Source: Macrostomum lignano (taxonomy: Eukaryota). Taken from it: 64,000 nt of DNA. A program made the position numbers and the translations under genes. The notes beneath the pieces are model-generated. The model made no database searches. It worked only from the letters and a program-made list of their open reading frames with translations, and was not told the DNA's origin. The stretch spans positions 310,001-374,000 of the forward strand of contig NIVC01000255.1 in assembly GCA_002269645.1 (NCBI GenBank), read 5' to 3'. The stretch's first letter is position 1. Each line of letters starts with the position of its first letter. This document shows, in pieces, positions 8,742-35,222 of the stretch.

Positions 8742-8780
<39 letters not shown>

Positions 8781-8809
8781 TAGTGTCTGTCTGTCTGTCT
8801 GTCTGTCTG

Positions 8810-8850
<41 letters not shown>

Positions 8851-8857
8851 TTCTTAG

Positions 8858-8890
<33 letters not shown>

Positions 8891-8929
8891 TTCTGTCTGT
8901 CTGTCTGTCTTAGTGTCTGTCTGTCTTAG

Positions 8930-8969
<40 letters not shown>

Positions 8970-9839: not shown

Positions 9840-10415
9840 GAAGTTTCAACTCTGTAACTCAACCGAAAAAGAAACTGTAAGCATGTGAAGTTTGTCTGCT
9901 TTTGCTGTTGTTTTTGCCACTCACTCGCTCATTCCCCCAGCCCAGATGAAGGGTCAGGCGATAGGGCTGAATGTACATAGCAAATTTTTTTAGAATAACT
10001 TTTTAATAGCCTTCTGTGTACCCCCGCGCGTGGAAAGGCTACGTTTAGCCATGACAGTTTAGTGAGAAATTCTAACCACTGTCCTCTGTATTGGCAAACT
10101 CTACAGCAGTTTAACAGTGGATTGCAAATCGAGGGAATTCAGCATGGTTTGTAAAAGCGAAAGATTTATGAAAAGGCGATGCAATGCAATACAACCCTAC
10201 TAAATTAGTCACACCATGGAAATTTTAGGTTTCTCTTAAAAGTACTTTGAATTTTAAATTTCCTCCTAAGAAATGCGTATTTCCTTTGTTGTTAGACTGC
10301 TGCAGACTGCAGTGGAGATGAAAATACACAAATTCCTTTCAGGACTGCAAATTGGCAAGAAAGAAGACGTGATCAAAGCATGAGAACAGCCATGAGAGTA
10401 CTAAGAGAGGAAAGA
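9840..10415 (+). repeat. Interspersed repeat family; other copies at 48058-48630 (+) and ~11620-11940 and ~12020-12400 (-)
   Basis: Shared blocks such as TTTCAACTCTGTAACTCAACCGAAAAAGAAACTGTAAGCATGTGAAGTTTGTCTGC and GATCAAAGCATGAGAACAGCCATGAGAGTACTA. Confidence 0.85.
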
Positions 10416-15089: not shown

Positions 15090-17340
15090 CTAAACATAAA
15101 AGAACCACAATGTCAAACATAGAAGAGCCACCATGTTGAACATTAAAGAGCCACCATGTCGAAAATTAAAGAGCCACCATGTCAAGCATAAAAGAGCCAC
15201 CATGTTGAACATTAAAGAGCCAACATGTCAAACATTAAAGAGCCACCATGTAAAGCATATATGTGACTCCATGTCAAACATATACGTGACTCCATGTCAA
15301 ACAAAAAAGAGCCACGATGTAAAACATATACTTATGACTCTTTGTCGAACATAAAGAGCCACCATGTAAAGCATATACGTGACTCCATGTCAAACACATA
15401 CGTGACTCCATGTCAAACATTAAAGAGCCACCAAGAAAAAAATTAAAAGCCACTATGTCAAACATTAAAGAGCCACCATGTCAAACATTAAAGAGCCACC
15501 ATATCGAACACTAAAGAGCCACCATGTCAAACATATAAGTGACTCCATGTCAAATATATACGTGACTCCATGTCACACATAAAAGAGCCACCATGTAAAA
15601 CATATACATATGACTCCATAACAAACATTAAACAGCCACCATGTCGAACATTAAAGAGCCACCATGTCAAACATAAAAGAGCCACCATGTCAAACACTAA
15701 AAAGCCACCATGTCAAACAATAAAGAGCCACCATGTCAAACATATACGTGACTACATGTCAAACATATACGTGACTCCATGTCAAACATAAAAGAGCCAC
15801 CATGTAAAACATATACTTATGACTCTTTGTCGAACATAAAGAGCCACCATGTAAAGCATTTACGTGACTCCAGGCCAAATATATACATGACTCCATGCCA
15901 AACACATACATGACTCCATGTCAAACATTAAAGAGCCACCATGTCACACATTAAAGAGCCAACATGTCAAACATTAAAGAGCCACCATGTAAAGCATATA
16001 TGTGACTCCATGCCAAATATATACATGACTCCATGTCTAACACATACGTGACTCCATGTCAAACATTAAAGAGCCACCATGTCGAACGTTAAAGAGCCAC
16101 CATGTCGAACATTAAAGAGCCACAATGTAGAACATTAAAGAGCCACAATGTAGAACATTAAAGAGCCACCATGTCGAACGTTAAAGAGCCACCATGTCGA
16201 ACATTAAAGAGCCACAATGTAGAACATTAAAGAGCCACCATGTCGAACATTAAAGAGTCACAATATTTAGAACATTAAAGAGCCACAATGTCAAACATTA
16301 AAGAGCCACCATGTCAAACATTAAAGAGCCACCATGTCAAACATTAAAGAGCCACCATGTCAAACATATATGTGACTCCATGTCAAATATATACGTGACT
16401 CCATGTCACACATAAAAGAGCCACCATGTAAAACATATACATATGACTCAATAACAAACATTAAACAGCCACCATGTCGAACATTAAAGAGCCATCATGT
16501 CAAACATTAAAGAGCCACTATGTCAAACATTAAAGAGCCACTATGTCAAACATTAAAGAGCCACCATGTAAAGCATATATGTGACTCCATGCCAAATATA
16601 TACATGACTCCATGTCTAACACATACGTGACTCCATGTCAAACATTAAAGAGCCACCCTGTCGAACGTTAAAGAGCCACCATATCGAACATTAAAGAGCC
16701 ACAATTTAGAACAATAAAGAGCCACCATGTCGAACATTAAAGAGCCACCATGTCTAACATTAAAGAGCCACCATGTCGATTATTAAAGAGCCATCATGTC
16801 AAACAATAAAGAGCCACCATGTTGAACATTAAAGAGCCACCATGTCAAATATTAAAGAGCCACAATGTAGAACATTAAAGAACCACCATGTAGAACATTA
16901 AAAAGCCACCATGTCAAACATTAAGGAGCAAAAATGTAGAAAATTAAAGAGCCACAATGTAGAACATTAAACAGCCACAATGTCGAGCATTAAAGAGCCA
17001 CCATGTCGAACATTAAAAAGCCACCATGTCAAACATTAGAGAGCCACCATGTTGAACATTAAAGAGCCACCATGTCAAACATTAAAGAGCCACCCTGTCG
17101 AACATTAAAGAGCCACCATGTCGAACATTAAAGAGCCACCATGTCGAACATTAAAGTACTGCCATGTCGAACGTTAAAGAGCCACCATGTCGAACATTAA
17201 CGAGCCACGATGTCAAACATAAATGAGCTACCAAGTTAGACATAGAAGAGCCACCATGTGAAACATATATGTGACTCCATGTCAAACATTAAAGAGCCAC
17301 CGCTTCTAACATTACTGAGCCACCATGACAAACATAAAAC
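15090..17340. repeat. 23-bp satellite A (GAACATTAAAGAGCCACCATGTC) with variant units
   Basis: About 95 tandem units, with the interspersed variant CATATACGTGACTCCATGTCAAA. Confidence 0.95.
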
Positions 17341-17457
17341 TGGCACGATGTCATAACACAGGAGAGACATTTTCAAACGTAATAAGAAGCGTCATGCCAA
17401 TCATAAAGCAGCCACTAGAAAGCTAAGGAAATGTTGCACTATATACTTTTTGTCTGG

Positions 17458-20593: not shown

Positions 20594-21599
20594 TCCACTA
20601 TGACAAACATATACGGTACTCCATGTCAAAAATTAAAGAGCCATCATGTCAAACATAACAGAGCCACCATGGCGAACATTAAAGAGCCACCATGTCAGAC
20701 ATTAAAGAGCCACCATGTCGAACATTAAAGAGCCACCATGTCGAACATTAAAGAGCCACCATGTCGAACATTAAAGAGCCACCATGTCGAACATTAAAGA
20801 GCCACCATGTCAAACATTAAAGAGCCACCATTTCAAACATAAAAGAGCCACTATGTAAAACATATATGCGACTCTACATCAAACATATACGTGACTTCAT
20901 GTCGAACATTAAAAAGCCACCATGTGAAACATATATGTGACTCCATGTCGAACATTAAAGAGCCACCATGTCAAACATATAAGAGACTTTATTTCAAATA
21001 TAAAAAAGCTACCATGTAAAACATAAAAACGACAATTTTGAACATTAAAGAGCCACCATGTCGAACATAAAGGAGCCACCATGTCGAACATAGAAGAGCC
21101 ACTATGTTGAACATTAAAGAGCCACCATATCAAACATTAAAGAGCCACCATGTCGAACATAAAGGAGCCACCATGTCGAACATAAAAGAACCACCATTTA
21201 GAACATAAAAGAGCCACCATGTCTAATATAAAAGAGCCACCATGTCGAACATAAAAGAGCCACCATGTTTAAAATTAAAGAGCCAACCTGTAAAACATTA
21301 AAAAAATTCACCATGTCAAACATATAAGTGACTTCATTTCAAACATAAAAGAGCCACCATGTCAAACGTAAAAGTGAGCGAATTTTAAAGGAGCCACTAT
21401 AATGCTAAGGAAACTGTCGCACTAGCTACTTATTATCTGGTGGATGCTTGCTATCTGGGGGATGCTTGCTATCTGGGGATGCTTGCTATCTGGGGGATGC
21501 TTGCTATCTGGGGGATGCTTGCTATCTGGGGGATGCTTGCTATCTGGGGATGCTTGCTATTTGGGTAACCCGGTTGAAAAAAATACTGGATTAGCCCAT

Positions 21600-22360
21600 T
21601 GAAATTGGCCCGCTCATCGGCCACTTCGTGTCAGAAAAGCCCGCTCTAAAAGCCCGCTCATTTTTCCAAATCAACGAGTCTCTCAAATCCGCCCGTTCCA
21701 CGGCCCGCTTCTGGGCCCGCTGGCTGGCCCGCTCACTGGCCCGTTCTAAACCGGCCCGCTGGCTGGCCCGTTGTTTGGCCCGCTGGCTGGCCCGTTGGTT
21801 GGCCCGCTCACTGGCCCACTCATTGACCCGTTCTAAACCGGCCTGCTGGCTGGCCCGCTGATTGGCCCCCTCATTGGCCCGTTCTAAACCGGCCCGCTGG
21901 TTGGCCCGTTGGTTGGCCCGCTGATTGGCCCGTTCTTAACCGGCCCGCTGGTTGGCCCGTTGGTTGGCCCGCTCATTGGCCCACTCATTGACCCGTTGTA
22001 AACCGGCCTGCTGGCTGGCCCGCTCATTGGCCCGTTCTAAACCAGCCCGCTGGCTGGCCCGTTGGTTGGCCCGCTGGTTGGCCCGTTCTAAACCGGCCCG
22101 CTGGTTGGCCCGTTGGTTGGCCCGCTGGTTGGCCCGCTCACTGGCCCACTCATTGACCCGTTGTAAACCGGCCTGCTGGCTGGCCCGCTCATTGGCCCGT
22201 TCTAAACCAGCCCGCTCATTGGCCCGTTCTAAACCGGCCCGCTCATTGGCCCGTTCTAAACCGGCCCGCTAATTGGCCCGTTCTAAACCGGCCCGCTGGC
22301 TGTCCTGTTGGTTGGCCCGCTGGTTGGCCCGTTCTAAACCGGCCCTCTGGTTGGCCCGCT
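21600..22360. repeat. Left subterminal repeat array (TGGCCCGCT / TGGCCCGTTCTAAACCGGCCCGC units)
   Basis: Reverse complement of the array at 31182-32000. Confidence 0.92.
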
Positions 22361-22682
22361 GAACGAACAAAAAAAATAAGTAAAGAAGCAAAATAAGCAT
22401 GAGATTTCTAAGTCAGACCGATGAGCCGTACAATTAGCTTTTTTATAAAAACCGGGAATATACTTCATCGGATCTGGTAAAAACAAAGAGATGTTAAGGT
22501 TAAAATTGAATACTAGTATTTTTTCATGGTGGCACGAATAGCTAAAAGAGCTAATATAGCTAATAGAGCTAAAAGAGCTAATATATAAAAGAGCAACCCT
22601 AGCCTCAGAGTCTATTCTCAACCCAAAGTAATGTTTGTCAGCATAGTGAAAAATTGTCACCACAATCGAGGCCTAGTCTCTA

Positions 22683-24353
22683 CTACTCGCTTTCCTCTTC
22701 ATTTTCTGCGCAGGCGCCACTTTTCGCAGACGAACTCTCCCGATCCCGTACGGTCCTGGCTGTACGGCGGAAGACCTCGCCGAGTTCGGCGTCTGTGAAT
22801 AGTTTTTTGTCCTCCTCTGAGACCAGTTTACTGGCCAGGTAGGACCGTATGGCCGCCTTCTTGGAGCTATCCAGCTCAACCCGGTTGGCCGCTTTCTCTC
22901 CTTTCACCTGTCGACCAGCCCAAGATGCGGTTCGCAGGTCTTGCTCAGGGCACACAGCAAGTATGACTAGCCGAACGGCTCGTCTGCGAATCTTGTTATT
23001 GTTTGCGGCTTTTCGCATTTCAACTGCTGCGGCTTCCAATTTTGTCAGGGCCAACGGACAAACCGTGACACCGGGAAATGCAGCTATCAGCGGCACACGT
23101 TTCGACGACTGGTTGCCCATCATGGAGGTCGATATATTTGCGATTGCCGTCGCAATGGCGTGGCTCACAAATCCACTGGTAAGCTGCGATGACGTCGAGC
23201 CACTTGGCTCGGCATCGATGCCGATATCGGCAGCAGCTGATGACGACTCTCCGGGTGCAGTACTCGAACCAGCGACCAACGTTTCGTAGTCACTAATAGA
23301 GCGCACCAGACTTTCGAGGTGGCTGCATGATTCTGTAGTTCTACGTGCCACCTCGTTGGCCGACCGCGCCTGCGCCGTGACGAACCGTAGCGTCTCAAGT
23401 ATCTGAGAATTCGCATGCATGGAACTTGCAAGACGGGTGTCATACTTTTGCAGCACGTCATCTTTCTGTGCCAGTTCCTGTTTCAGCTGCTCATTCTCAG
23501 ACCGAATGGCCTCATTCTCAATCTTCAGGTTGGCTGCATCAGTTTCAGCAGCCCCCCGCTTGTCCGTCTCTTCTCGATTTGCCTCACGTAGGTCACGACA
23601 TTCGATGTCGAGGTTCCGGCAGCGCGGGCATCCGGCATCAGGGTGATTTATAACGGGTTGCACGCGCCTATAGGCGCCTGCAGAGCCCGACCCCATTAAA
23701 GTTGCCAATTTGGCCAGGTTGTCCCGGGCAGCGTAGGCGGACTTCCTATCCGGAAAAGGCCCGGCTGTCAGGAAAGCGTCGAAAGTTTTTGCACTCGGGC
23801 TATGGCCAGTCCGTACTTGTACTTTAACGCCGACTGTTCGTGTTACGGGGTCCGGGTCGACGATGCACTTTTGGTCGATGGCCATAACTTTGCCGGTGTT
23901 AGTGTACGTGAGCACCCACCAAATAGCTTTGTGGATGACCATGACACGGGGCGCCTTAGCCTTTGGTGGTCCACCGGCCCTATTGCGATGCCGCATCTCC
24001 TTTCTCGACTCTAGATCTGGCTCGCTCGATGAGTCAGATAGAGATTCGCGATGCCGATGCCTATCGGCATTGGCTTCGGCTTTCCGTTTTGTAGTAGAGC
24101 CGGTCGGCTCCGCGGACACGGCCGTGCTCATATCGGAGCCGATTAGCGCCGTTGAAGTGGCGTCGTGGGCTTTAGGGAGCGTCGTGGGCTCATCTCTGCC
24201 GTCGCCATTCAGCTCAGCAGGATTTTCCTGGACGTCAGCAGCTGCAGTTGTTAGGCCAGTATTGGCATCTTTATCTTTCCGCTTCTCTTTTTCGGCCCGA
24301 TTCTCGTGATCCCTCTTCTTATTCATTCTATCTGTCTTCTTTCCGTCTCCCAT
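22683..24353 (-). CDS. Transposon accessory protein: low-complexity N-terminus, small beta-rich domain, CxxC + coiled coil, C-terminal BEN-like DNA-binding domain
   Basis: The 581-codon ORF (to 24428) is intact. The likely ATG at 24353 follows acceptor TCTCATTGCAG|AATA. The C-terminus AVRLVILAVCPEQDLRTASWAG...RVELDSSKKAAIRSYL...LGEVFRRTARTVR fits the BEN pattern. Confidence 0.7.
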   Translation of the reverse strand: MGDGKKTDRMNKKRDHENRAEKEKRKDKDANTGLTTAAADVQENPAELNGDGRDEPTTLPKAHDATSTALIGSDMSTAVSAEPTGSTTKRKAEANADRHRHRESLSDSSSEPDLESRKEMRHRNRAGGPPKAKAPRVMVIHKAIWWVLTYTNTGKVMAIDQKCIVDPDPVTRTVGVKVQVRTGHSPSAKTFDAFLTAGPFPDRKSAYAARDNLAKLATLMGSGSAGAYRRVQPVINHPDAGCPRCRNLDIECRDLREANREETDKRGAAETDAANLKIENEAIRSENEQLKQELAQKDDVLQKYDTRLASSMHANSQILETLRFVTAQARSANEVARRTTESCSHLESLVRSISDYETLVAGSSTAPGESSSAAADIGIDAEPSGSTSSQLTSGFVSHAIATAIANISTSMMGNQSSKRVPLIAAFPGVTVCPLALTKLEAAAVEMRKAANNNKIRRRAVRLVILAVCPEQDLRTASWAGRQVKGEKAANRVELDSSKKAAIRSYLASKLVSEEDKKLFTDAELGEVFRRTARTVRDRESSSAKSGACAENEEESE

Positions 24354-24744
24354 TATTCTGCAATGAGAGCGGGAAAGGTTTCTTTCTAAATGCGGTTTCA
24401 TATGACATGCGTCATATGACGCAAGCATGCGTCAGTGTCATGCTAATGAAAGTAAGGAAGGATATTGAATTCCATAACGAAAAATGCAACGCCTGTGCAT
24501 CTTCTATGTGCAATCGACGCTGACAAGTCGACGCAAGTATACTTTAGCTATGAGACGTTGATGGCATGGAAGCTGGCAAGCTACTGCTGGGAGAAGCGCT
24601 ACTATAGTAGTACTCGCTACACTACTCATGACATTGAGCCGGCTGGCTCGACTAGAAGTATTTATATAAATAGATCTAGATCTAATAGAGTAGTTACAGT
24701 ACAATATTGTCAATTATTTAACAGTGACGTACAGCCTATGCTGC

Positions 24745-25560
24745 CTACAGCTTCTTATCCCGTGTGTTAGACGGCCCGGCGCTAGCACCCGTCAGTGGAC
24801 GCATGCGCCTCTTGCCTAACCTCATGGCCTCAAAGGGCGCTTCTGGCTGAGTGTCAGGCATTTCGATTTTAAAAAAGTTGGGGTCGCGCTTCTGCTGAGG
24901 CTGATTACTGCGGTGCCGCCCGTGCTCTTGCAGCCGTCTCTGCTTTGTACGAGGTGACAAATTCGAAAACCAGGCCTCACAGTCAGGGCAGCAGTGCGGG
25001 TCCAGTTCCTGCCGATCCGCCCGTTTTCGAACAACGCGTACGCAAGCGTAATTCTTTTGATTCGGCGGGTCAGGCATGCGGTTATACTCCGCGCGCAGTT
25101 TGTTCAAGTTCTCAGCCGGCTCGTAGTCTCGCGCCGCGGGCTGATCGTCACTGGCGACGTTCGCAGTCGAGCCAGCCGGCTCAATGTCGTTAAACAGAGA
25201 CGGCGAACCGAGCTGGGTCTCGGCGTTGTAGCGAAGCTGATCGTCGTTGGCGTCGTTCGCAGTCGAGCCAGCCGGCTCAATGTCGTCAAACAGAGACGGC
25301 GAACCGAGCTGGGTCTCGGCGTTGTAGCGAAGCTGATCGTCGTTGGCGTCGTTCGCAGTCGAGCCAGCCGGCTCAATGTCGTCAAACAGAGACGGCGAAC
25401 CGAGCTGGGTCTCGGCGTTGTAGCGAAGCTGATCGTCAGGCGTCGTTCGCAGTCGAACCAGCCGGTAACCGGTAACCGATCAGGTCGACAAGAGTCGGCG
25501 ACATAGTTCGCGCCACGTCTCGAAGGAGGTCATCCTCTAGGGCTCAGGTCGTTCGACATG
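24745..25560 (-). pseudogene. CtIP/Sae2/Ctp1 C-terminal-domain protein with three 32-aa N-terminal repeats; frameshift at ~25438
   Basis: Positions 25053-24847 encode NYACVRVVRKRADRQELDPHCCPDCE...HGRHR...PNFFKIEMPDTQ, which aligns without gaps to the recalled human CtIP C-terminus. The frame is open from ~25437 to 24745. A 2-nt loss relative to the repeat consensus disrupts the 5' part. Confidence 0.8.
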
Positions 25561-25908
25561 TCTGAAAAGCAAGTATATGTCGTCTGTTATGCACACGCAA
25601 GTTTGTCCGACACACATCTGAGCTTGGAGTATCAATACCATGCTGCTGGGCTGTGCAGTGGGAAATTGTTAACTATTTATTACTATTACGTTACTAGTAA
25701 GTAGAGACGCTTGACAAACTTGATTAGTGAACGAACGATGATTGACCTGATTGGCCTGTATACGCCACAAATCGTATATATATATATGTATATATGAGCA
25801 AAATAAGCAATATAAACTAAATAAGCAGTGCGAAAGCAATATAATCAATACAAAGGCAATGTAAGCAATATAAGCAGTATTGGCAATATGAGCAATATAA
25901 GCAATATG

Positions 25909-25967
25909 AGCAAAACACAGTTGAAGAAGGCATGCTGGAAAAGAGCAATTATGGCATATCCCGTCCC
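25909..25967 (-). promoter_or_regulatory. 59-bp intergenic module, copy 1 (identical to 27706-27764)
   Basis: Exact direct repeat 234 nt downstream of the 26201 stop. The minus strand contains TTGCTCTTTTCCAG, an acceptor-like sequence. Confidence 0.6.
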
Positions 25968-26003
25968 CTTTGAAATCGAGCCGACTGGCTCGATTTCAAA
26001 GGG
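25966..26003. other. Perfect 17-bp-arm hairpin CCCTTTGAAATCGAGCC-GACT-GGCTCGATTTCAAAGGG
   Basis: Direct inspection. Its core is the element-wide GAGCC-N4-GGCTC palindrome. Confidence 0.9.
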
Positions 26004-26200
26004 CCAATTTGTCCAATTTCTCCAAATTGCCGTGCTCTTTCTAAAACGTGGCGGTCTTTGTACGGTTTAAGCGGAATCTAATCAGATTCAATAAACTCTA
26101 TATTCTGTTATACTCTCTTAATTGTGGTGGGCAGAAACGACTAGTGATTGAAGCTGCGGCTAACTACACGTTCCGGAATTACTAACGTGGCCTACATTAA

Positions 26201-27379
26201 TTACTTAAACCGCACATAGGCCGCCCACGTCCCTACAATGGCGACGGCCAGAGTCATGTATAGGACATTCGATTTATGTCCTAAGTACACCAGCCGGTAC
26301 TCCTGGGCAGCTCGACCGCGTCGCCTTGACTTTTTCAGCACATTGACCCGATTTTGCACCGGTGGCGTGACACCGGCGGATCCGGCGTGCTCATTAACGG
26401 TGCTCACGGCTCGGTCGAAGATGGCCTGGGCGTCGAGCGACAACTCGGTCTTCGCGCCAGCCGGCGCGTCTACGATTCCGCTGTCTCTGAGGTGCGAATA
26501 CAACGTGCGGACTGCATTAGTCCAGCACGTTGTTTCGCATCCCCGGGACCACAGAAAGATAAAGACACAAACTAGTGTCAAGATGGCATTGCCCATGCTG
26601 TCCGAAAATAGTATGCTGTGTTCAGACTCATACTGCCGTAGTTTGTAAGAAGCAGCAGTCATGAACGTCTGCATATCTGTATGCCAGCAGTATGGCCAGT
26701 TTTTTCCATTCGCGTACAGCTCTCTGCACCGACCGCAAATGCCAGAGTAATTTCCCGTCGCGCCGAGGGTGCCTTCGGCCTGCTGAGCGGAATCGCTCAG
26801 AGGCTCGTTGTACAACGACATGTCGCGAAGCTGTTTGACTACTCCTGTGGCAGCAGACGCAGCTGGGACACAGGTCGAGCCGGTTGGCTCGACACGACCC
26901 GTCGCGCCGAGGGTGCCTTCGGCCTGCTGAGCGGAATCGCTCAGAGGCTCGTTGTACAACGACATGTCGCGAAGCTGTTTGACTACTCCTGTGGCAGCAG
27001 ACGCAGCTGGGACACAGGTCGAGCCGGTTGGCTCGACACGACCCGTCGCGCCGAGGGTGCCTTCGGCCTGCTGAGCGGAATCGCTCAGAGGCTCGTTGTA
27101 CAACGACATGTCGCGAAGCTGTTTGACTACTCCTGTGGCAGCAGACGCAGGAACACAGCTCGAGCCGACTGGCTCAACTGTAGCTCCGGCGTCGTCACTA
27201 CAGTCGTCGTCCCAGTTGCTGCAGGCGCGCGATTTAACTAGCCGTTGCTGCTCGGCATGGGCTGCGTGGATGTCATCCTCACAGTCGTCGCAGTGAGAGG
27301 AGCGACAAAAAAAACAATAGTCGGCGAACGCGAAGTATTCCCGCGAATTGCATTTGGGGCATGGTTGCTGGTCCGGCAT
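26201..27379 (-). CDS. 392-aa transposon accessory protein: N-terminal Cys/His Zn-finger, three 47-48-aa repeats, unknown C-terminal domain
   Basis: Intact ATG ORF with CPKC..CFFC..HCDDC...H..H, and 141-144-bp in-frame repeats at ~26760-27190. Confidence 0.7.
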   Translation of the reverse strand: MPDQQPCPKCNSREYFAFADYCFFCRSSHCDDCEDDIHAAHAEQQRLVKSRACSNWDDDCSDDAGATVEPVGSSCVPASAATGVVKQLRDMSLYNEPLSDSAQQAEGTLGATGRVEPTGSTCVPAASAATGVVKQLRDMSLYNEPLSDSAQQAEGTLGATGRVEPTGSTCVPAASAATGVVKQLRDMSLYNEPLSDSAQQAEGTLGATGNYSGICGRCRELYANGKNWPYCWHTDMQTFMTAASYKLRQYESEHSILFSDSMGNAILTLVCVFIFLWSRGCETTCWTNAVRTLYSHLRDSGIVDAPAGAKTELSLDAQAIFDRAVSTVNEHAGSAGVTPPVQNRVNVLKKSRRRGRAAQEYRLVYLGHKSNVLYMTLAVAIVGTWAAYVRFK

Positions 27380-27705
27380 TGTGATGTCTTAATCTTAATT
27401 TGTTTATTTGTCCTTAATTTGTACAAATTAATTTCTTTTGCTGGTACTTCTTTGTCAGTGGGTCGACTGAAATTAATGCGAAGTAGGTGCACGATTATTG
27501 GAACAAAAGGACAGCTGCGTACCGGTTGTAACCTACTATATTGTCAGGTAGAAATAAAGGCGTAAAGGAAGGCAACATATGGATATAGACGTCATGTGAC
27601 CGACGTTTGTTACTAAATATAAATATAATTTTTTATGACACCACATAGCAATGTGCAGTAGTAAGCAGTATAAGCAATATATATATTATATATAAAAGCA
27701 ATAAA

Positions 27706-27764
27706 AGCAAAACACAGTTGAAGAAGGCATGCTGGAAAAGAGCAATTATGGCATATCCCGTCCC
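27706..27764 (-). promoter_or_regulatory. 59-bp intergenic module, copy 2
   Basis: Identical to 25909-25967 and 230 nt downstream of the transposase stop. Confidence 0.6.
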
Positions 27765-27993
27765 GTTTGAGCGAGGGTGTCCTCTAGCCCTCACCCCTTG
27801 TTGTAAACTGTAGTCATAAGTTTTGAATGAACAGGTGACATTTCTACTCAATTTAAAAAGCTTTAGAACTTTCGAATGTTTACTTACTATAGTGATGTGA
27901 GTTCTAAGAAATTATATTGTTTTACCAGAAAGCCTGTGCAACGATTTTTCCTTCTTATTGGGACACCCTACGTACAATGAGTACATACAATTC

Positions 27994-30774
27994 TCACGCT
28001 GCGTAAGAAAACTGAATATGGGGGAGGAATGCTACATAGCGGTCGTTCACACAACACGTAGCGAGTACGTCGTTAGCAGGGATTTCGAAGTAGTATTTGT
28101 CAACTGCGCAAAATGGATTGGCACGCAGGCGCCGAACGTGTGCGACTGAGCATCCGCCGTGGTCCGGTTCGCCAGTCAAGCGGTACAACGGATGATTGTC
28201 CTCGTGCGGCTCCACAGTCAGAAGGCGGCGTAGGCGAACCCATGCGCAATTGTCCCGGAGTTGAATTTCCTCAATTCGTGCGAATTCAAACGGCTGACGA
28301 CAGTTAGGGATGAGGACAGTAACAAAGCACGAGGCGGCGCGCTGGTGGATCAGGCGAGGCAAGAATATTTCAATGCGTAGCCCGCTGGTCAGTACTGCTT
28401 TGCCATACCGTGTGTCACCGCCCGCCAATTGGCGGCGAATAGGATTGCGCAGTCGCACACCATCCGGCAGTCGAACCTCACCATTTGGTGGTCCCTCGCT
28501 GAAGATGTTGGGGAGTTGCAATTCGGCCATCATTTGCCTTCGCGCCAATTGGCGCTGTAGGAGGCCGGCAACTTCGGTGTCAACATTCCTGGAGCCGTGA
28601 ATTTTGGTGCGAAGATTCGCATGCGACGACTCAAACAAGCCCGCAGACATCCTCCACATTGGCCCGTATAAAGTTACGTACGATACAAAGTGCTCACAAA
28701 CTTGGTGTGCATTGTACGTAAGGGCCATGTTGGAGTACATCTGAGGCAGCTGACTGTAAAAGTAGTGCAGAAGCCGGCTGGCTTTCATCACTTCCATTAG
28801 AGGCGCTCCATCCAATGTAAGCCAGAACATGGCCGTGGACAGTAGCTGAAGGTGCCAGTAGTAGCGGTCGGGCAGGATGCCTTACATCACCATAGGGCCG
28901 TAGACGATTAACCATGCCTCAAGTTCGTGGCCCCGAAACATGCCGAATTCATGGAAACTTCGGGGAGCACGTTGATGAGACAGGGGTACGTGAATCCGCG
29001 AAGAGGCAAGGTCCACATCTGCACGTCGCGAAACTAGATTGGGGTTATGCGCGTGGTACATGTCTGGTTTCTTAGGATGAAACAGCTGTTTCAAAATCCA
29101 GTGAACGAGTCCAAGATAGCACTGATGAAGCAGACACGGTGGACACCCATGCATGTAGTCGAAACCGTTTAACTGGTCCAACACTGACACGCACATAACG
29201 CCCAGATAGTTGTCCTTGCCGACCGGGATGTTGTGCGCCAGTAGGCGCGTGTCTCGCAAGCTACGAGCGTGCGGTGTAATACAACCGACTGCGGTTGCCA
29301 GCGCAACCGCCTCTTCTTTGCCACTGACTGGGTACCGATTGGCACCCAATGATCTCTGCGTCTTCACATAGCAGTTGTCGCAGCCGAACTCTGCATTGTG
29401 ACGCTTTAGACCGACAACCTCAGCTCTCTGTGGGGCATCCAAGACGAATAGGTACGGGTGCAGTCGAAGAAGACCAGGCGCGTCGCCTTCAGTGCCACCA
29501 CCTGTGCTGTAGGTGATCCCGATAGACCGGAGCTCATTCAGCTCTCTAACAAGGCCGGGAAGGAAGGTGGATGTCTTGACTTTCGACTTTGCAGCCCAGA
29601 AACCACATACGACGATGAAACGCGATTTCATTGCTTCGTGTACTTCGTTGATACTCAAGTACACTGGGCACATTTCCATCAGCGCGTCTGCAAATACTGG
29701 AAAGCCGTCGATGTTCACAGTATACGACAGATCTTGCTTCAAGTGTAGCCGAACTGAACGCTTGAAATGCCGATACTCGTCGCAACTGGATACTGAGACA
29801 AAATTACGATCTTCAGATGACAAATCGACAGGGAAAGTTACGCTCTGTAGAAGCCGGCACTGTTCAATTAACTGTCTGATTTGCAATTTAAAGTCGGTGG
29901 TATAAAACTTGGATACGCCGGCCGGCGACAGTTCCTTGTTACAATAAGTGCAATTTTCACGGTTCTGAGCCTGTGCTGACGTGACCTCAGCACTACAGGA
30001 GGAACAGAACAGTCGGGGTGGCGATGTAAAGTCGTTCGCGAATGCCTGGACTGTTTTCCGTAGTAAATATACACTACCAGGCAGGTTGCTACCGACTGGC
30101 ACAGCTGCATGGAAGAGGCGAAGCAGGTCAGCTATGCCTTTCCTTGGCAGAGACTGGCGCTCGCTGAACAAATGCACATAGGCCGCAAACGAATCGTAGG
30201 TCAACGGAGAGTCTAGGAAAAGTGCGGCTCCATTTCTCCTACGCGGCTGCATATCCATAGCTTCTGGGTTATGGGTGGCTCCATTGCCAACACACGGTAC
30301 ATCCTCATCCTCTGGTGGGCGGTCATCTTCAGTGAAGTCCTCACAATCGTCGCACTGCTCGATGGCGTCCAGCGCCATTGGAGCGCCACTCCAATAGTCG
30401 TCATCTGGAGCTTCTTCGCCTGGTTCCTCAACGATAGATCTAGAAGATACGTCCTCATCGTCGTTGTCTGAATACTGCGAGCCGGTAGGCTCGACGACCA
30501 TGGGAGTCTGGACGCCACTGCTACATCCACCTGTTGCCAATGCTGGCTGCCAGCTGCTGCCAACACTGGCTACACTGTTGCTTGTTTGCGCGTCATGAGT
30601 GGTTGGTACGTCATGAGTGGTCCGAGTTGCAGTTAGTAAATGGCTCACTGAAGCTTCTGCTCGTGTCGGACGGGCTGTCGCCGCAACTGTCTGTCTGAGT
30701 GATTCTTTGAGTCGACTGAAGTGCCGTGCGATGGCAACTGACTTCTTGTCGAGCTCTTTTAGTCGTTCAAGTGA
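27994..30774 (-). pseudogene. EnSpm/CACTA-type DDE transposase (Transposase_21/Tnp2-like), ~925 codons, single in-frame TAA at 28882-28884
   Basis: Motifs NIDGFPVF, LDAPQRA...HNAEFGCDNC, CLLH (C/DxxH) QCYLGLV, RAPRS...GHELEAWL, TYNAHQ...YGPMW...FES. The two called ORFs are joined in frame by GILPDRYYWHLQLLSTA. The frame is open upstream to an acceptor at ~30774. Confidence 0.9.
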
Positions 30775-31181
30775 CTGAAAATAAAGAAATTGAATACCTG
30801 TGTGACTAGGAGAGAATCCGTACTAAAATTGTTAATTAACAAATACCATCATTCTACTATCAGTTTGAATCAGTTTGCTATCTTAGCCCAAGAGCCAACA
30901 AAGGGCGAAGCAATGGTTTCACACTAAACTGGGTGATATCTGAAGTACATACGTCACAACGTAGCGCGATATACAAATTGCTGTGGGCGTATAAGGCGAT
31001 AAAAATAAATAAAATTGACACACTCATTGTACATGTCATCATGAAATTTGTGTATGCACAGTTTATTGGACAGCATTAGTGCTCTACAAATCAAATAATT
31101 GCCCGAGCGCCAAGACACCGCAAAAGTTTACACGTACAAGTTTATACACCATTTGATAAGATTATCACGTTCACAACAAGT

Positions 31182-32000
31182 CAGCGGGCCGGTTTAGAAC
31201 GGGCCAGTGAGGGGGCCAACCAGCGGGCCAACCAGCGGGCCGGTTTAGAACGGGCCAACCAGCGGGCCAACCAGCGGGCCGGTTTAGAACGGGCCAACCA
31301 GCGGGCCAACCAGCGGGCCGGTTTAGAACGGGCCAACCAGCGGGCCAACCAGCGGGCCGGTTTAGAACGGGCCAACCAGCGGGCCAACCAGCGGGCCAAC
31401 TAGTGGGCCGAGCAGCGGGCCGGTTTAGATCGGGCCAGTGAGCGGGCCAACCAGCGGGCCGTGCAGCGGGCCGGTTTAGAACGGACCATTGAGCGGGCCA
31501 ACCAGCGGGCCAACCAGCGGGCCGGTTTAGAACGGGCCAGTGAGCGGGCCAACTAGTGGGCCGAGCAGCTGGCCGGTTTAGAACGGACCATTGAGCGGGC
31601 CAACCAGCGGGCCAACCAGCGGGCCGGTTTAGAACGGGCCAACCAGCGGGCCAGTGAGCGGGCCAACTAGTGGGCCGAGCAGCTGGCCGGTTTAGAACGG
31701 GCCATTGAGCGGGCCAACCAACGGGCCAACCAGCGGGCCGGTTTAGAACAGGCCAACCAGCGGGCCAACCAGTGGGCCGCGCAGCGGGCCGGTTTAGAAC
31801 GGGCCAGTGAGCGGGCCAACCAGCGGGCTAATCAGCGGGCCGATCTGCGGATCGGTTTCGAGCGGGCCATTAGCGGGCTAATCAGCGGGCTTCAGAGCAG
31901 GCCGGGTTTCAGCGGGCCAATTTGTTGTAAAAGGCCTGTAATACGGGCCGATTCGCTTCGGCCCGCTAATGGCCCGCTCAAAAGCCCACTGAGGCCCGCT
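31182..32000. repeat. Right subterminal repeat array (AGCGGGCCA / GCGGGCCGGTTTAGAACGGGCCA)
   Basis: Inverted relative to the left array. Confidence 0.92.
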
Positions 32001-32619
32001 AAGTTTTTCAACCGGGTAATGCTTGCCATCTGGGGGATGCTTGCTATCTGGGGGATGCTTGCTATCTGGGGGATGCTTGCTATCTGGGGGATGCTTGCTA
32101 TCTTGGGATGCTTGCTATTTGGGTGATGCTTGCTATCTGGGGGATGCTTACTATCTGGGGGATGCTTGCTATCTGGGGATGCTTGCTAGCTGGGGGTGCT
32201 TGCTATTTGGGTGATGCTTGCTATCTGGGGGATGCTTGCTATCTGGGGAATGCTTGCTTTTTTGGGTAATGCTTGCTATCTGGGGGACGCTTGCTATCTG
32301 GGGGATGCTTGCTATTTGGGTGATGCTTGCTATCTGGGGATGCTTGCTATCTGGGGGATGCTTGCAATCTGGGGGATGCTTGCAATCTGGGGGATGCTTG
32401 CTGTCTTGGGATGATTTCTTTTTGCATTGCACTTCATTTCAGTAGTTTGTCTATTTTCTTTGTGAAAGCTTTATTTGGCTATCTTCTTTTACTTGTAGAG
32501 AACAGAGATTCTATACAGATGTCCCCCAACGGGGGGCGAAGATTGCTAGTCAATATAGCTAAGTTGATGTAACTAACATTCTAAATATTTTTGCCCAAGA
32601 TCGCAGGATTTTTACTAGA

Positions 32620-35222
32620 GAGGAGAGATAAGACAGGACAGTGGAGAGCAGCCGATTAAAGCGCTCAGTCTCCTCATAAATTGCCCGCATTGGCTGGTTC
32701 TTAAGCGGGTGCAGCACGTCGCCGTTGGGGAAGCGCTTAAGACAGCCATGGTAGAAGCAGTCATGAAACTGGAGTGGAGCACTGTCATAGTCTCCCGGTC
32801 GAAACCGTCCACCTTACGGCCCATGGCGAAAGCCTCGCCGCCAGAGTCGGCTGTCAGCAGACTGCCGCCAAATTCGGTTGCATTCAAATGTGCAAGCCAG
32901 CACCGCGCATTGTACGACTGCTCATCTGACCGGCGGGAAATCACCCCAAGAGTGTTTATTGGGCTCCATAAACTTTTGTGAATACTGCCATGGCCAAGCC
33001 CGCAATGGTGTTGGATTGGGCAAATGCGTCCAGTCCGCAAATGTTCTTAATCAGGCGGGTGTATTTAAGACAGCGTTCCCGCAAAATTAGAGTTTCCTGC
33101 AGGCAGTAGTCCAGGTACTCCTTGTTGAAATTAAACACTTGGCCCTCCTGCTTGGCCAGCCAGTCTGCGATGGAGTCGTGCTGCTTATTCTTCTTCCCGC
33201 CGTACATTTCAATCGAGCAGTAAGGCCCCACGTAGCCCCAGTTTTGCGGCTGGTTAAACACATGCGGGAAATTTCCTTTGGTTAGTTGGGTGCCAAAACC
33301 AAGCGCCTTTGGGATTTGCGCCAGACCAATAGGGATGAATTTGAGGCTGTCCTTGAATAAAATCTTATTGCTCTTCATGTACATTAGGCGGCTATTTTGG
33401 AAGATCACTTGCGGCTTCTTCTTGGCCAGTCCGTTGAGTAGGGCTCCGAGCAGGAGGAATGCGTCATACGCAGAGCCATTGTGTGCAATAGCAATAGCGC
33501 CCTGCTTGAACATACTAGTCAGCCAGCAGTAAAAGGCGTCAATTCAGTGCGGCCCAACTGAAACAAACTCTCGCATCCCGCAAGCACAGTCATTGTGGGA
33601 GACAGGCAGTAAAATCTCGTGCCAGATCGCGCCCCGCAATGCAATTGGCTGAGCTGTGCAACCCCCTACACGCGCAACAGCGGGGCCTAGGGAAGAGTTT
33701 GGGACACGCCTCACACGGATGTGGCTGCTGTGACCAAGTGTACCCGGTGCTGCTTGTCAGAGTCAACGTACGTCTCGAAATCTTAGTAAACTCTTAGACT
33801 CGCTAGACTCTTAAGCTTTAGGCGGGGTGACAAAGCACTCGTGGGTGGCAGTTTCATCGTACTGCTTGCAGACTGGGCACTTAACGTGACCACACTGATT
33901 CTCTGGGGCCTGGCCTACTTTTAGCTCTTCTAGATAGCCACACGTGCCGCAAACGTAGACTGAATCACAGCGAGATCTACCCGCCTTATTCTTGCGCTTG
34001 TGATTTTCTAGACACTGAGCATTATAACAATTTAGCCCGCAATCATGGCATCTCACATATACGCGGTTAGCCTTGCAGTTGGCACCTGTAGTCTTGCATG
34101 TGCTGCAGGCGTCGGCGCACTTGTGCTCGGGTTTGGTGCAGTCGTAGGCCATCTCGCACTTGGAGCAGTAGTGCATGGAGCCGAAAAACGCTGGCAACCG
34201 GGTGACCAGATTGAAGTGCTGCTCAACCAGGTGTAGGTGCAGAATCTCAGTGCCGGGCAGGTTGAAGATGCACGTGTTGGCCTCCTCTGCCCTGTACACC
34301 CGTACACCAAAATCGTGGCCAGGATGCAAGCGGTTCAGGGCCAGGATCGCCTCGGGCAGTACGTCCACCCCGAAAGGGCCGGTCTGCGAGACAGTTTGAA
34401 GAGTCTGTGTAGGGGGGGGGGGTAAGGCAATTCTTTTAGTAATCCCTGATATGTATAAAAGTATATTAGTAATCCATAAAATGGTTCTTTTAGTAATCCC
34501 TGATACTATGCATATTAGTTAAAATTCCTATCCGAAAATGGTTCTTTTAGTATTCCATGATACTGTGTAAAAATTATTTGAAATTCTCTTCAGAGTATGA
34601 TTTTTTAGTAATCCTTATGGTAAAAATTCCATGAAAATCAGTGCATAACTTATCGTGTAGAGGCCTGCTTCAATTTGGAGCTCTGTAGCTAGATTAGTCT
34701 GGGCGGACGAATTGGCCTTGATTGTTTGCCACACTTTCTTGGTGATCGCCTTGGCCACAAGTTGGAGATAGGCGCAGCCCACGACCAGAGCTCGCAGCAG
34801 GCAGCTCTTGTCCGTGTTGGTGATGCGGACATAGTGGCGCGAGAAAGCATGGCGCTCCTCCAGATGCTTGTTCTCGAGGGCGCAGCCACCTCGAGGCACC
34901 CAGGCCTTGAGCAGACGGATGGAAAAGTTGCTCGTCAGGACAGTGGCATCCGACTGCACAATCTTGTCAATGTGCTTGAACAGCAATTCCGCCGTCATGC
35001 GGGCTGCACGCACCGGAGGAGTATGCGCCGCTTTAAGCATGTTGTCGTTCTCAAACTTTGCAGCCATAAAATCATCCCCCGCCAAATCCTGCTTAAACAC
35101 CTCGAGAATACTAGCGAATGTCTCGCGTAAATCACTGTGTCGTCTAACTTCACCACATATTCAACGCCCTTTGCCCTAAACTTTGGCAGCTCCCGCTGGT
35201 TATCCAGCCGGGCCGTAAAACC
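32620..35222 (-). pseudogene. polB: Polinton/Maverick protein-primed DNA polymerase B, N-terminal, Zn-finger and exonuclease part; fragmented and 3'-truncated
   Basis: KIVQS...VPRGG...ITNTDKSCLLRALVV; Cys-rich cluster YCSKC...HKC..C..C; ExoI DFETY (~33780); ExoII AHNGSAYD; FKDSL..P..L..IPK..KGNFPHVFN..N..YVGPY; ExoIII-like YCLQET; WLAHL...GE...VDGFD. Several frameshifts are present. Confidence 0.88.
34413..34654. other. AT-rich insertion within pPolB, with internal repeats and flanked by GTGTAG direct repeats
   Basis: GTGTAG at 34407-12 and 34655-60; internal repeats of TTCTTTTAGTAATCCCTGAT. Confidence 0.5.

Follow-up and report, generated by a model that had tools for sequence, protein, structure and literature searches.

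How DNA transposons influence the repair of their own breaks is a long-standing question, and the answer decides whether cut-and-paste elements gain copies. The known effects of transposons on repair consist mostly of the recruitment of host factors. A locus of Macrostomum lignano raised the question whether a transposon can carry a repair factor of its own. Within a window of 64 kb (the whole stretch of DNA that was analysed), an earlier note had described a CACTA-like element with intact ends and four genes, encoding a transposase, a Zn-finger protein, a CtIP/Sae2-like protein and a BEN protein, in a combination that it proposed as a candidate for a new system. If true, an element-encoded, MRN-activating CtIP domain would be a direct and testable case of a transposon steering the choice of repair pathway.

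Positions 21569-32016 of the window were found to be a 10.4-kb cut-and-paste DNA transposon and are its exact ends. The borders were composed as follows.

21566..21568: left target site duplication TAA, the same trinucleotide as at 32017-32019
21569..21581, plus strand: left terminal inverted repeat CCCGGTTGAAAAA, 13 bp, one of two exact matches in the window
21607..22360, plus strand: left subterminal array, about 48 GGCCCGYT-type motifs at a spacing of 12 or 15 bp
31183..31993, minus strand: right subterminal array with about 48 copies of the motif, most of them in the orientation opposite to those on the left
32004..32016, minus strand: right terminal inverted repeat, inverted CCCGGTTGAAAAA, 13 bp, perfect match
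32017..32019: right target site duplication TAA, paired with the left TAA

A third site for CCCGGTTGAAAAA was absent from the 64-kb window with up to two mismatches allowed. After removal of the element and one TAA in silico, the register of an 18-bp host minisatellite was restored. The TAA at both borders, together with this reconstructed empty site, supports a true 3-bp target site duplication, read from one insertion (n=1) and the minisatellite register. Thus the intact ends and duplication reported before were reproduced. All occurrences of GGCCCG[CT]T in the window lay within the element, whose subterminal 12-mers read GGCCCGCT and whose termini read CCCGGTTG…CAACCGGG, i.e. CCCG…CGGG.

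The interior held four minus-strand ORFs, all in the same orientation, as the earlier note had stated, and so exceeded the canonical number of two. Gene models were drawn from the ORFs, and the element was examined in a single DNA copy.

27994..30501, minus strand: DDE transposase of the CMC superfamily, 835 codons when counted from its first ATG
28882..28884, minus strand: in-frame TAA at codon 540 of the transposase, upstream of the catalytic E624
27683..27770, minus strand: intergenic module, copy 2, upstream of the Cys/His-rich gene
26201..27379, minus strand: Cys/His-rich ("ZnF") protein, 392 aa
25886..25973, minus strand: intergenic module, copy 1, upstream of the CtIP-like ORF, followed by (TTGCTTATA)n
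24745..25479, minus strand: CtIP/Sae2-like open frame, 244 codons, 96-bp repeats followed by a Sae2-like C-terminal domain
24847..24945, minus strand: match to Pfam SAE2 (PF08573) that covers positions 77-109 of the 110 in the profile
22683..24428, minus strand: accessory gene, 581 aa, collinear with the accessory proteins of five related elements (L001-L005)
22716..23114, minus strand: BEN-like domain of the 581-aa protein (residues 439-571), from profile, fold search and paralogue

Superfamily placement was based on the transposase. Its residues D265, D355 and E624, its C(2)C motif (C374/C377), its H(4)H motif (H599/H604) and the pair L458-H459 were invariant in an alignment with 11 homologues; the motif definition of CMC transposases was taken from PMC4079192 and PMC12730594. 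A protein database search returned 4927 homologues at E<=1e-3. The element transposase itself had no Pfam match, and its link to Transposase_21 is transitive, through homologues that match it at E values of about 1e-36 to 1e-43: insect homologues with 20-23% identity (MAFFT) match this family, the cut-off of 28.6 bits being reached by three of five (P0009, P0022, P0034) and the other two falling just below. The short target site duplication of CMC elements (2-5 bp; 3 bp in EnSpm and Chapaev) was found in the TAA/TAA of the single insertion. The termini 5'-CA…TG-3' (CAC…GTG, and CACTA in CACTA proper) were not found, since the element has CCCG…CGGG; such termini are given for CMC "in most cases" (PMC12730594) and their lack is, by that wording, atypical and not disqualifying. 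CACTA sensu stricto was rejected on the same termini. The "CACTA-like" label of the earlier note therefore holds for the superfamily, by motifs and homologues, and not for the ends.

The in-frame TAA at 28882-28884 lies in a conserved block without gaps in the homologues and was therefore read as a nonsense codon; an intron was rejected at this position, since the homologues align through it without a gap. Because the stop precedes E624, a full-length transposase is impossible from this copy, which, judged from its reading frame, is probably unable to mobilise itself. The copy is thus not fully intact. It is a young, nearly intact and slightly damaged CMC-superfamily cut-and-paste transposon.

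As in En/Spm of maize and other CMC elements, the DDE transposase is a homologue of TnpD (Transposase_21) and contains C(2)C and H(3-4)H motifs, the target site duplication measures 3 bp, the terminal inverted repeats are short, and long subterminal arrays repeat a motif of about 12 bp in both orientations, as is characteristic of CACTA / En-Spm. Also in common is a second gene in the same orientation, whose accessory product is predicted here to bind DNA. In contrast to En/Spm, the termini (CCCGGTTG…) are neither CACTA nor CAC…GTG, two further genes are present and the host is a flatworm. The accessory protein also differs in having CxxC, coiled-coil and BEN-like parts; no match to Transposase_24 or a similar plant TnpA family, nor any other Pfam transposase-associated match, was obtained for the 581-aa protein. 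With Chapaev3 the element shares an animal host and the motifs C(2)C, LH and H(4)H, and its 3-bp duplication TAA fits the TWA of that group (PMC4079192). Chapaev termini are, however, invariably 5'-CAC…GTG-3', and the Chapaev element described in PMC4079192 has about 2.3 kb and one 556-aa transposase, whereas the present element has 10.4 kb and several genes. The Chapaev3 context A-TWA…TWA-T is matched on one of two flanks (g-TAA…TAA-t, n=1).

Five related elements, L001-L005, were compared, giving six families with the present one.

L001: terminal inverted repeat CCCGATTGAAAATC, GTCGGCACT arrays, transposase, F-box/LRR ORFs, accessory gene
L002: transposase, and accessory gene with Cys cluster and BEN-like domain
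L003: complete 9.95-kb element, 33-nt terminal inverted repeat starting CCCGCTGAAAAAA, transposase, two-exon accessory gene
L004, L005: transposase, then accessory gene

The transposases of this clade were 34-41% identical in the alignment, and the sources were M. lignano and environmental metagenomes, one of them marine. The termini were of the type CCCG-x-TGAAAA, with dense arrays of 12-bp subterminal motifs, each family having its own; CCCGATTG and CCCGCTG were found among the relatives, and the terminus of L003, CCCGCTGAAAAAATCG, is related to CCCGGTTGAAAAA. No matching target site duplication was found at L001 and L003. The core genes of the clade encode the DDE transposase and an accessory protein with coiled coil and BEN-like domain, adjacent to each other in all five relatives, which marks the latter as the standard second gene of the clade and not an add-on. 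A CtIP-like gene and a separate ZnF gene were both absent from all five. The CtIP-like gene is thus family-specific cargo, and neither gene is required for transposition in the clade. The slot corresponding to this cargo is occupied in L001 by the F-box/LRR ORFs, and the accessory protein of L002 contains a loosely similar, fused Cys cluster (BLASTP E=0.23 against the ZnF protein). Together these elements delimit a CMC clade of animals whose termini are not CAC and whose second gene is BEN-like.

The accessory protein of 581 aa comprises an N-terminal beta-rich domain, a CxxC motif (C267/C270), a coiled coil at about 268-386 and a C-terminal BEN-like helical domain. A profile of this domain from the six families had the BEN domain of NAC1 (8yzs) as top PDB match (E=0.029). 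An AF2 model of the domain (pLDDT 78, pTM 0.72) was compared with the PDB by Foldseek; BEN domains made up five of the top eight matches (NACC1 twice, Bsg25A twice, Insv), and BANP was found at rank 8. These BEN matches had TM values of 0.45-0.60 and weak E-values of 0.12-2.6, the top match being NACC1 (probability 0.99, TM 0.49). In the paralogous L002/P0005 family, Pfam BEN was matched at E=0.018 with 14.6-15.7 bits against a cut-off of 23.2, and in the 581-aa protein itself Pfam BEN (PF10523) was not found even at E<=10. The support is below threshold in each individual test and remote, and all of it agrees, so that the domain is termed BEN-like from profile and predicted fold, and the "BEN protein" of the earlier note is kept in this qualified form. 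This C-terminal domain, about 120 aa in size, is predicted to be all-helical like the BEN domains of NAC1/NACC1, Insensitive, Bsg25A/Elba and BANP, which are its best match by predicted fold and profile; unlike them, it stays below the Pfam threshold and is joined to a beta-rich domain at the N-terminus, a CxxC motif and a long coiled coil. BEN proteins bind specific sequences, often palindromic sites, as dimers. By analogy, we infer that the BEN-like protein may serve as a transposon accessory factor, and its gene is presumed, from position and likely role, to be the clade counterpart of the TnpA-type second gene. The clade would then give the BEN domain a transposon-accessory role and point to a route along which BEN proteins may spread.

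The presence of a CtIP/Sae2-like domain was confirmed: the SAE2 profile was matched with 27.7-27.8 bits (Pfam cut-off 19.8; E=6e-6). The frame has a GC content of about 50%. Ahead of the Sae2-like domain it contains 3.4 copies of a 96-bp (32-aa) repeat carrying an EPxGS motif. Its first in-frame ATG, at 25077, gives a product of 110 aa; no ATG was found ahead of the repeat region, and an upstream segment with an ATG is offset by 2 nt, the frame apparently breaking where the first degenerate repeat lies. As in CtIP, Sae2, Ctp1 and COM1, the domain keeps a basic VVRK, CxxC, RHR, P-N-F-F (versus P-E-N-F-W) and a PI3KK-type TQ site (T86-Q87). Asp-Pro (D75-P76) stands at the expected position of the CDK S/T-P site; D75 presumably corresponds to T847 of human CtIP. 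No S/T-P was present in residues 60-90, and D75-P76 and T86-Q87 are 11 residues apart. In human and yeast, the CDK site (T847 and S267, respectively) and the PI3KK TQ site are spaced 12 residues apart, and phospho-T847 CtIP binds NBS1 at its FHA/BRCT domains (PMC10706839).

In contrast to cellular CtIP, the element protein is transposon-encoded, has the CDK Ser/Thr-Pro replaced by Asp-Pro, has 32-aa tandem repeats in front, and lacks the internal region and the N-terminal tetramerisation/coiled-coil domain, so that the C-terminal third only is represented. The tetramerisation domain was found neither in the ORF nor upstream, where only the 32-aa repeats occur and, farther upstream, all frames are closed; a spliced exon upstream is conceivable. 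Full-length CtIP normally requires this domain for function. A search of 5.8 billion database proteins returned nothing closely related to the CtIP-like sequence, and this speaks against its having been captured recently from a host gene that is annotated. Judged by profile and motifs, this is a genuine Sae2/CtIP C-terminal domain encoded within a transposon, which is unusual. A search of the accessible literature yielded no description of a transposon-borne CtIP/Sae2 domain. The gene combination proposed as unusual is so with regard to this domain and not to the BEN-like gene. A precedent for a host-derived enzyme or regulator gene beside the transposase is provided by fungal DNA transposons of CMC and other types (EnSpm, Plavaka, KDZ and others), which stably carry a TET/JBP gene (PMC12730594). 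Their cargo is, however, a DNA-demethylation enzyme documented over many families and copies, whereas here a domain of a DSB-resection cofactor is found in a single family.

The protein encoded between the transposase and the CtIP-like frame had been called a Zn-finger protein, which was not upheld beyond a Cys/His cluster. Its N-terminal cluster, of the form CxxC…CxxC…HCxxC…H…H, is followed by three repeats of 144 bp (48 aa) and a C-terminal region; no significant family or PDB match was obtained, B-box scoring E=2.7. In both cargo genes the internal repeats (96 and 144 bp) have lengths divisible by three. The two copies of the intergenic module share 91% identity across 88 nt, including a core of about 60 nt without differences in the alignment, and a 34-nt probe from the module matched both copies exactly.

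The element-wide palindrome claimed before, (TC)GAGCC-N4-GGCTC(GA), was recovered in 11 copies, eight of them distinct, between 23197 and 30492 (expected, 0.04). Within the 64-kb window, GAGCC-N4-GGCTC was found only inside the element.

23197, 24097, 24636, 25169, 25265, 25361, 25978, 26877, 27021, 27162, 30479: palindrome starts

In all four ORFs the palindrome encodes E-P-x-G-S in frame. The copy at 25978 is also the centre of a 38-nt hairpin palindrome.

Several explanations of these findings were weighed. Plant CACTA and Pack-type elements pick up fragments of host genes, and the ZnF and CtIP-like ORFs could be such transduplicated fragments, without a role in transposition or repair. This would fit the lack of both genes in the relatives, the unrelated F-box/LRR ORFs of L001 in the same slot, which suggest that the slot tolerates arbitrary cargo, the retention of just the C-terminal third of a CtIP-type protein, and the missing ATG and apparent frame break. 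The earlier note had named the absence of the accessory genes from other family members as evidence against its reading; between families, the BEN-like gene was kept in five of five and the CtIP-like gene in none, a pattern of lineage-specific cargo that at this level speaks in part against that reading. The open frame of 244 codons at this GC content, however, the retention of Sae2 motifs despite a divergence beyond word-sharing matches in the whole protein collection, the repeat units in multiples of three, the family-specific in-frame palindrome in cargo and core genes, and the upstream module common to the two cargo genes suggest a long co-residence and organisation of the cargo and not a recent accident. 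Passive cargo is a possible though doubtful explanation; were it correct, the finding would shrink to ordinary annotation work on a new flatworm transposon family. The truncated CtIP could also act as a dominant-negative decoy which occupies MRN/NBS1 and blocks resection, leading to end joining at donor sites or to end protection. The absence of the oligomerisation domain and a product of possibly just 110 aa agree with this, and with an acidic residue at the CDK position NBS1 would be bound constitutively; the 32-aa repeats could, on the other hand, supply multivalency in place of tetramerisation. Such a decoy is considered unlikely.

That the ZnF and CtIP-like segment is a second transposon nested within a two-gene element would account for its absence (~24.4-28.0 kb) from the relatives and for its own repeated upstream module, but neither inverted repeats nor a duplication surround this segment, no second transposase, integrase or reverse transcriptase was matched in it, and the palindrome extends into the flanking transposase and BEN-like genes; this is very improbable. 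An assignment outside CMC was effectively refuted. The TAA duplication would fit the TWA of PIF/Harbinger, and termini starting with CCC, as in piggyBac-like elements, differ from the CAC…GTG of CACTA/Chapaev. No ORF, however, matched a DDE_Tnp_4, Plant_tran or piggyBac transposase, and the thousands of CMC-type homologues, the match of relatives to Transposase_21 and the motifs C(2)C and H(4)H speak for CMC, in which the Chapaev3 group likewise makes TWA duplications (PMC4079192). PIF/Harbinger was rejected because DDE_Tnp_4-type transposase and Myb-like Pfam matches were lacking in the element ORFs.

On balance, we favour with modest confidence a CMC copy from a clade with two core genes, in a family which gained the ZnF and CtIP-like cargo and whose CtIP-like module engages MRN at the breaks made by the element. 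TnpA brings the ends of En/Spm together. The accessory protein would likewise dimerise via its coiled coil, bind the subterminal motifs or the internal palindromes and join both ends for the transposase. Two cargo genes would have been gained between the core genes, one for a protein rich in Cys and one for a Sae2/CtIP C-terminal module that stands alone. Most likely, this module would serve to engage MRE11-RAD50-NBS1 where the transposase has made breaks, whatever the stage of the cell cycle. Donor ends that are hairpinned or blocked by protein would thereby be opened, and repair would be biased to homology-directed copying from the sister chromatid, by which the donor copy would be restored. 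The cargo is tied to the element by the in-frame palindrome common to the four genes and by the duplicated module common to both cargo genes. The self-contained system of the earlier note, which cuts, regulates itself and steers the repair of its own breaks, is conjecture, within which the steering of repair is plausible; the missing CDK switch site would make the case more pointed. The CtIP-like module could serve as a compact natural tool to promote resection, and tests are practical because M. lignano is transformable.

A bolder form of the favoured reading appears rather unlikely. It holds that the MRN-activating end of CtIP has been domesticated as a small factor that does not depend on CDK, Asp taking the place of phospho-threonine, and that would force resection and homology-directed repair at excision breaks and make transposition effectively replicative; the palindrome (V-E-P-x-G-S-T) would be both a DNA site for a dimeric binder and a peptide tag gathering the four proteins.

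With its stop at codon 540, the present copy would rely on transposase supplied in trans. The only close database protein is a chimeric prediction from M. lignano, with 99.8% identity over 542 aa, which speaks for this flatworm as the host and for a young family. Its host-derived N-terminus is absent from the window, and the prediction therefore represents a second locus.

The earlier note had placed the element at 21569-32016, and these coordinates are its exact ends, each formed by a perfect 13-bp terminal inverted repeat (TIR). The TIR sequence, CCCGGTTGAAAAA, has just two matches across the 64-kb window when up to 2 mismatches are allowed. The host site is an 18-bp minisatellite (unit ATGCTTGCTATCTGGGGG), of which ~7 units lie on the left (21434-21565) and ~22 units on the right (32019-32415). 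When the element and one TAA were removed in silico, the 18-nt unit was restored, whereas removal of the element alone left a 3-nt register shift in the array. This register, together with the TAA on both sides, favours a true 3-bp target-site duplication (TSD) over a 1-in-64 chance, and the TSD is intact as claimed. A second minisatellite (23 bp, ~33 units, 20621-21374) is located just upstream of the 18-bp array. Each end of the element carries a subterminal array of ~700-800 bp with ~48 GGCCCGYT-type motifs at a spacing of 12 or 15 bp; the left and right arrays are mutually inverted, and the motif occurs nowhere in the 64-kb window outside the element. The interior holds four long open reading frames (ORFs), all on the minus strand, in agreement with the claim of four co-oriented genes.

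Features of the element and its borders
21566-21568 and 32017-32019, TAA flanks
21569-21581, TIR, 13 bp, perfect, CCCGGTTGAAAAA; inverted copy at 32004-32016
24428-22683, minus strand, accessory (BEN-like) ORF, 581 aa
25479-24745, minus strand, CtIP-like open frame
25886-25973 and 27683-27770, duplicated 88-nt module, 91% identical, with an identical core of ~60 nt
27379-26201, minus strand, Cys/His-rich (ZnF) ORF, 392 aa
30648-28882 and 28830-27994, minus strand, transposase ORF pieces in a single frame, broken by one TAA
28882-28884, minus strand, nonsense TAA, codon 540 counted from the first ATG at 30501

An exhaustive HMMER search yielded 4927 homologues of the transposase at E<=1e-3. The nearest are proteins of other M. 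lignano families and of metagenomes (37-43% identity), followed by insect and fish proteins with 24-27% identity in HMMER and 20-23% in the MAFFT alignment. Several insect and fish homologues match Pfam Transposase_21, the family of En/Spm TnpD (tnp2); one of them additionally matches Plavaka. D265, D355 and E624 are invariant in the alignment, and the alignment motifs, these residues included, correspond to the signature of the CACTA/Mirage/Chapaev (CMC) superfamily (PMC4079192, PMC12730594). The transposase is of the CMC type, and the 3-bp duplication fits the TWA pattern that Chapaev3 also produces. PIF/Harbinger or piggyBac identity was rejected because a transposase of either type is absent. 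The designation 'CACTA-like' is thus correct at the superfamily level and fails for the termini, which are CCCG…CGGG and neither CAC…GTG nor CACTA. In the literature searched, mentions of the EnSpm-like lineage 'Lanisha' are confined to PMC12730594 and papers on the moss Ceratodon purpureus.

Five related loci were used for comparison.

Related elements
L001, M. lignano, 13.85 kb: GTCGGCACT subterminal arrays, transposase, F-box/LRR ORFs, then an accessory-type gene
L002, M. lignano: transposase, then a gene with Cys cluster, CxxC, coiled coil and helical C-terminus
L003, marine (Tara Oceans) metagenome contig, 97-10043: complete element of 9.95 kb with 33-nt TIRs
L004 and L005, one further metagenome: transposase, then directly one gene

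CCCG-type termini are a feature of the clade, shared by the ends of L001 (CCCGATTGAAAATC) and L003 (CCCGCTGAAAAAATCG). The subterminal motif differs family by family and is of the TCCGGTTTTT type in L003, which encodes an intact transposase of 863 aa and one downstream gene with two exons; its flanks show no matching TSD. The F-box and LRR ORFs of L001 are located at 15177-17371 on the plus strand, between the transposase and accessory genes (F-box-like, E=5e-5).

The TAA in the transposase of the window copy falls within a conserved block without gaps, which reads GPLVLPHVLHGEYERY in P0005, a homologue of the L002 family, and GPMVM*GILPDRYY in the window. Two introns were considered at this stop and rejected: GTAAG…CAG is 40 nt long and out of frame, and across GT…AG (45 nt, in frame) the homologues align ungapped. 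On the ungapped alignment, the TAA at 28882-28884 is a nonsense mutation and not part of an intron. As a product cut at codon 540 would lack E624, the window copy is probably non-autonomous. The transposase frame is open for ~90 codons 5' of the first ATG (30776-30501, minus strand), back to an acceptor-like tttattttcag. The gene model P0001 splices from the subterminal repeats into this point, resulting in a host-transposon chimeric prediction.

P0001, a UniRef entry of M. lignano, is the sole close database protein and joins the transposase of the element to translated subterminal repeats and to a host part that resembles guanylate cyclase. Its transposon part is 99.8% identical to the window over 542 aa. 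Since the host part is missing from the window, the entry represents a second locus, and this identity between two loci marks the family, as judged from sequence, as young. The assembly index contained no exact match to P0001 or to any of the three ORFs queried (581, 278 and 392 aa), and no second family copy with DNA was obtained by these look-ups. A six-sequence transposase profile returned zero confirmed loci from metagenomes.

The 'BEN protein' is the regular second gene of the clade, since collinear genes lie downstream of the transposase in the relatives; it is positioned like TnpA in En/Spm. Six downstream proteins are collinear with the 581-aa protein in the alignment, and all six combine a CxxC and a long coiled coil with a C-terminal helical domain (~120 aa). 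An N-terminal beta-rich region (YWVV…GPFE) is present in 5 of the 6 and is replaced by a Cys cluster in the L002 family. Pairwise BLASTP of the 581-aa protein with its L001 counterpart gave E=3e-6. No Pfam BEN match was obtained for the 581-aa protein, even at E<=10; profile, paralogue and fold signals, each of them weak, point to BEN. The L002/P0005 paralogue matches Pfam BEN at E=0.018-0.04, and the best match of the six-family profile in the PDB was the NAC1 BEN domain (E=0.029, 85 residues aligned). The C-terminal 133 residues were modelled with AF2 from a two-row alignment (pLDDT 78, pTM 0.72), and the model was compared to the PDB with Foldseek. The best match was the NACC1 BEN-DNA complex (prob 0.99), and the top eight also included the BEN domains of Bsg25A, Insv and BANP, with TM values of 0.45-0.60 and weak E-values of 0.12-2.6. 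Because these three independent signals agree, the C-terminal domain is probably a divergent BEN domain. AF2 on the whole 581-aa protein as single sequence was poor (pLDDT 52), Foldseek against viral structures was uninformative, a word-indexed homology search gave zero matches, and the protein sequence retrieved nothing useful from the PDB. In the literature searched, CMC elements with a BEN-domain protein as accessory factor were not found.

The CtIP/Sae2-like protein was confirmed by a Pfam SAE2 (PF08573) match of 27.7 bits, above the cut-off of 19.8. The sequence (…VRVVRKRADRQELDPHCCPDCEAWF…GRHRSNQPQQKRDPNFFKIEMPDTQ…) contains a basic stretch, CxxC, RHR and a TQ site, as in the Sae2-like domain. 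In CtIP/Sae2, a CDK Ser/Thr-Pro site precedes the TQ by 12 residues (human T847/T859, yeast S267/T279), and its phosphorylation is required for triggering of MRE11-RAD50-NBS1 (MRN) clipping (PMC10706839). Residues 60-90 of the element protein, in contrast, are devoid of Ser/Thr-Pro and contain Asp75-Pro76, 11 residues before Thr86-Gln87. Asp75, the probable equivalent of human T847, may be phosphomimetic. The Sae2-like domain is preceded by 3.4 copies of a 32-aa repeat; the N-terminal domain of CtIP is absent from the frame and upstream of it. Ahead of the repeats the long frame lacks an ATG; a short segment that does carry one is 2 nt out of frame, with an apparent break near 25440. From the first in-frame ATG at 25077, a 110-aa product is predicted, essentially the Sae2-like domain by itself. 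Nothing similar to the domain was found in a word-indexed search of 5.8 billion database proteins, no locus was confirmed in metagenome contigs, and the protein sequence gave nothing useful in the PDB. The earlier note knew of no described element that combines an end-resection cofactor domain with a BEN protein and an element-wide palindrome; in the literature searched, no CtIP/Sae2 domain encoded by a transposon was found.

The N-terminus of the ZnF protein contains a CxxC…CxxC…HCxxC…H…H cluster; three 48-aa repeats and an unassigned C-terminal region make up the rest. What the earlier note called a Zn finger is this Cys/His cluster; significant family or PDB matches were absent. Homology of this N-terminus to the L002 Cys cluster was rejected because only the Cys spacing agrees (BLASTP E=0.23). 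On the coding strand, the 88-nt module precedes the ZnF ORF with its copy at 27683-27770 and the CtIP-like ORF with its copy at 25886-25973. Both copies contain an acceptor-like CTCTTTTCCAG|CATG, and 9-bp (TTGCTTATA)n repeats follow each copy. The module may be a shared promoter, 5'UTR or trans-splice site. Neither inverted repeats nor a duplication were found at the flanks of the middle segment with these two genes (~24.4-28.0 kb), which makes a nested second element unlikely, and this option was rejected. An Rfam scan of the window gave no RNA family.

The element-wide palindrome GAGCC-N4-GGCTC was verified: 11 copies (8 distinct sites) occur between 23197 and 30492, with 0.04 expected, and none in the remaining window or in L001-L003. 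It is often longer (TCGAGCC…GGCTCGA). A role as clade-wide companion of the BEN-like gene was rejected, since a dispersed palindrome of this kind is lacking in L001, L002 and L003. All 6 independent sites within the four ORFs share one frame, (V/I/A)-E-P-x-G-S-(T/S) (chance ~0.0014), transposase residues 3-8 being among them. The codons GAG, GGC and TCN are fixed (P ~4e-5 under a peptide-only model with element codon usage). On the common frame and the fixed codons, constraint seems to act at both the DNA and the peptide level; the palindrome could serve as a binding site for a dimer, encode a short peptide motif that the proteins share, or do both. A near-perfect hairpin palindrome of 38 nt (25966-26003; 17-nt arms, 4-nt loop) is centred on the copy at 25978, in the gap that separates the ZnF gene from the CtIP-like gene. 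AGTCGAGCCAGCCGGCTCAATGTC, a 24-nt unit of the 96-bp repeats of the CtIP-like gene (25165-25188, 25261-25284, 25357-25380), recurs inverted and 100% identical at 24630-24653, past the CtIP-like stop codon and ahead of the start of the BEN-like gene.

That the element is a young CMC-superfamily transposon is well supported, as is its place in a clade whose members have CCCG termini and a second gene of the BEN-like type; the same holds for the two extra genes of the family and the nonsense codon in the transposase of the window copy. In the proposed mechanism, the BEN-like coiled-coil protein would take the TnpA role; GGCCCGCT 12-mers or the palindrome may be its DNA targets. The CtIP-like module would engage MRN at excision breaks, possibly without CDK control, and thereby bias repair.

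The main rival is that the ZnF and CtIP-like genes are passive cargo. CtIP-like sequence was detectable in the DNA of none of the five relatives (L001-L005), which speaks for this rival. The F-box/LRR ORFs of L001 are other cargo in the same slot, and the start of the CtIP-like ORF is uncertain, both of which also fit passive carriage. Long open frames speak against it, as do motifs kept although divergence is deep and repeat units that are multiples of three; moreover, the palindrome is common to all four genes and the upstream module to both cargo genes. Fungal transposons with TET/JBP genes, which likewise carry extra cargo genes, are a precedent for comparable cargo (PMC12730594).

Around the element the window is rich in repeats: besides minisatellites and polypurine tracts, it holds a fragment of a Polinton-type polymerase B and the pol gene of an LTR retrotransposon. 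A 185-aa ORF at 32956-33513 (minus strand), ~1 kb beyond the right end of the element, has a match to the type B polymerases of organelles and viruses (DNA_pol_B_2, E=4e-13) and is probably the fragment of a Polinton/Maverick-type element. At 61243-63620 (minus strand), ORFs that encode an integrase core (rve) and RT-associated RNase H domains represent the pol region of an LTR retrotransposon. A 522-aa ORF without Pfam match (48701-50269, minus strand) overlaps polypurine GAGAG-type low-complexity arrays, which cause a strong GC and AT skew at 46400-49200. Comparable polypurine tracts are present in L002 at 1057-2258 and 3392-4053.
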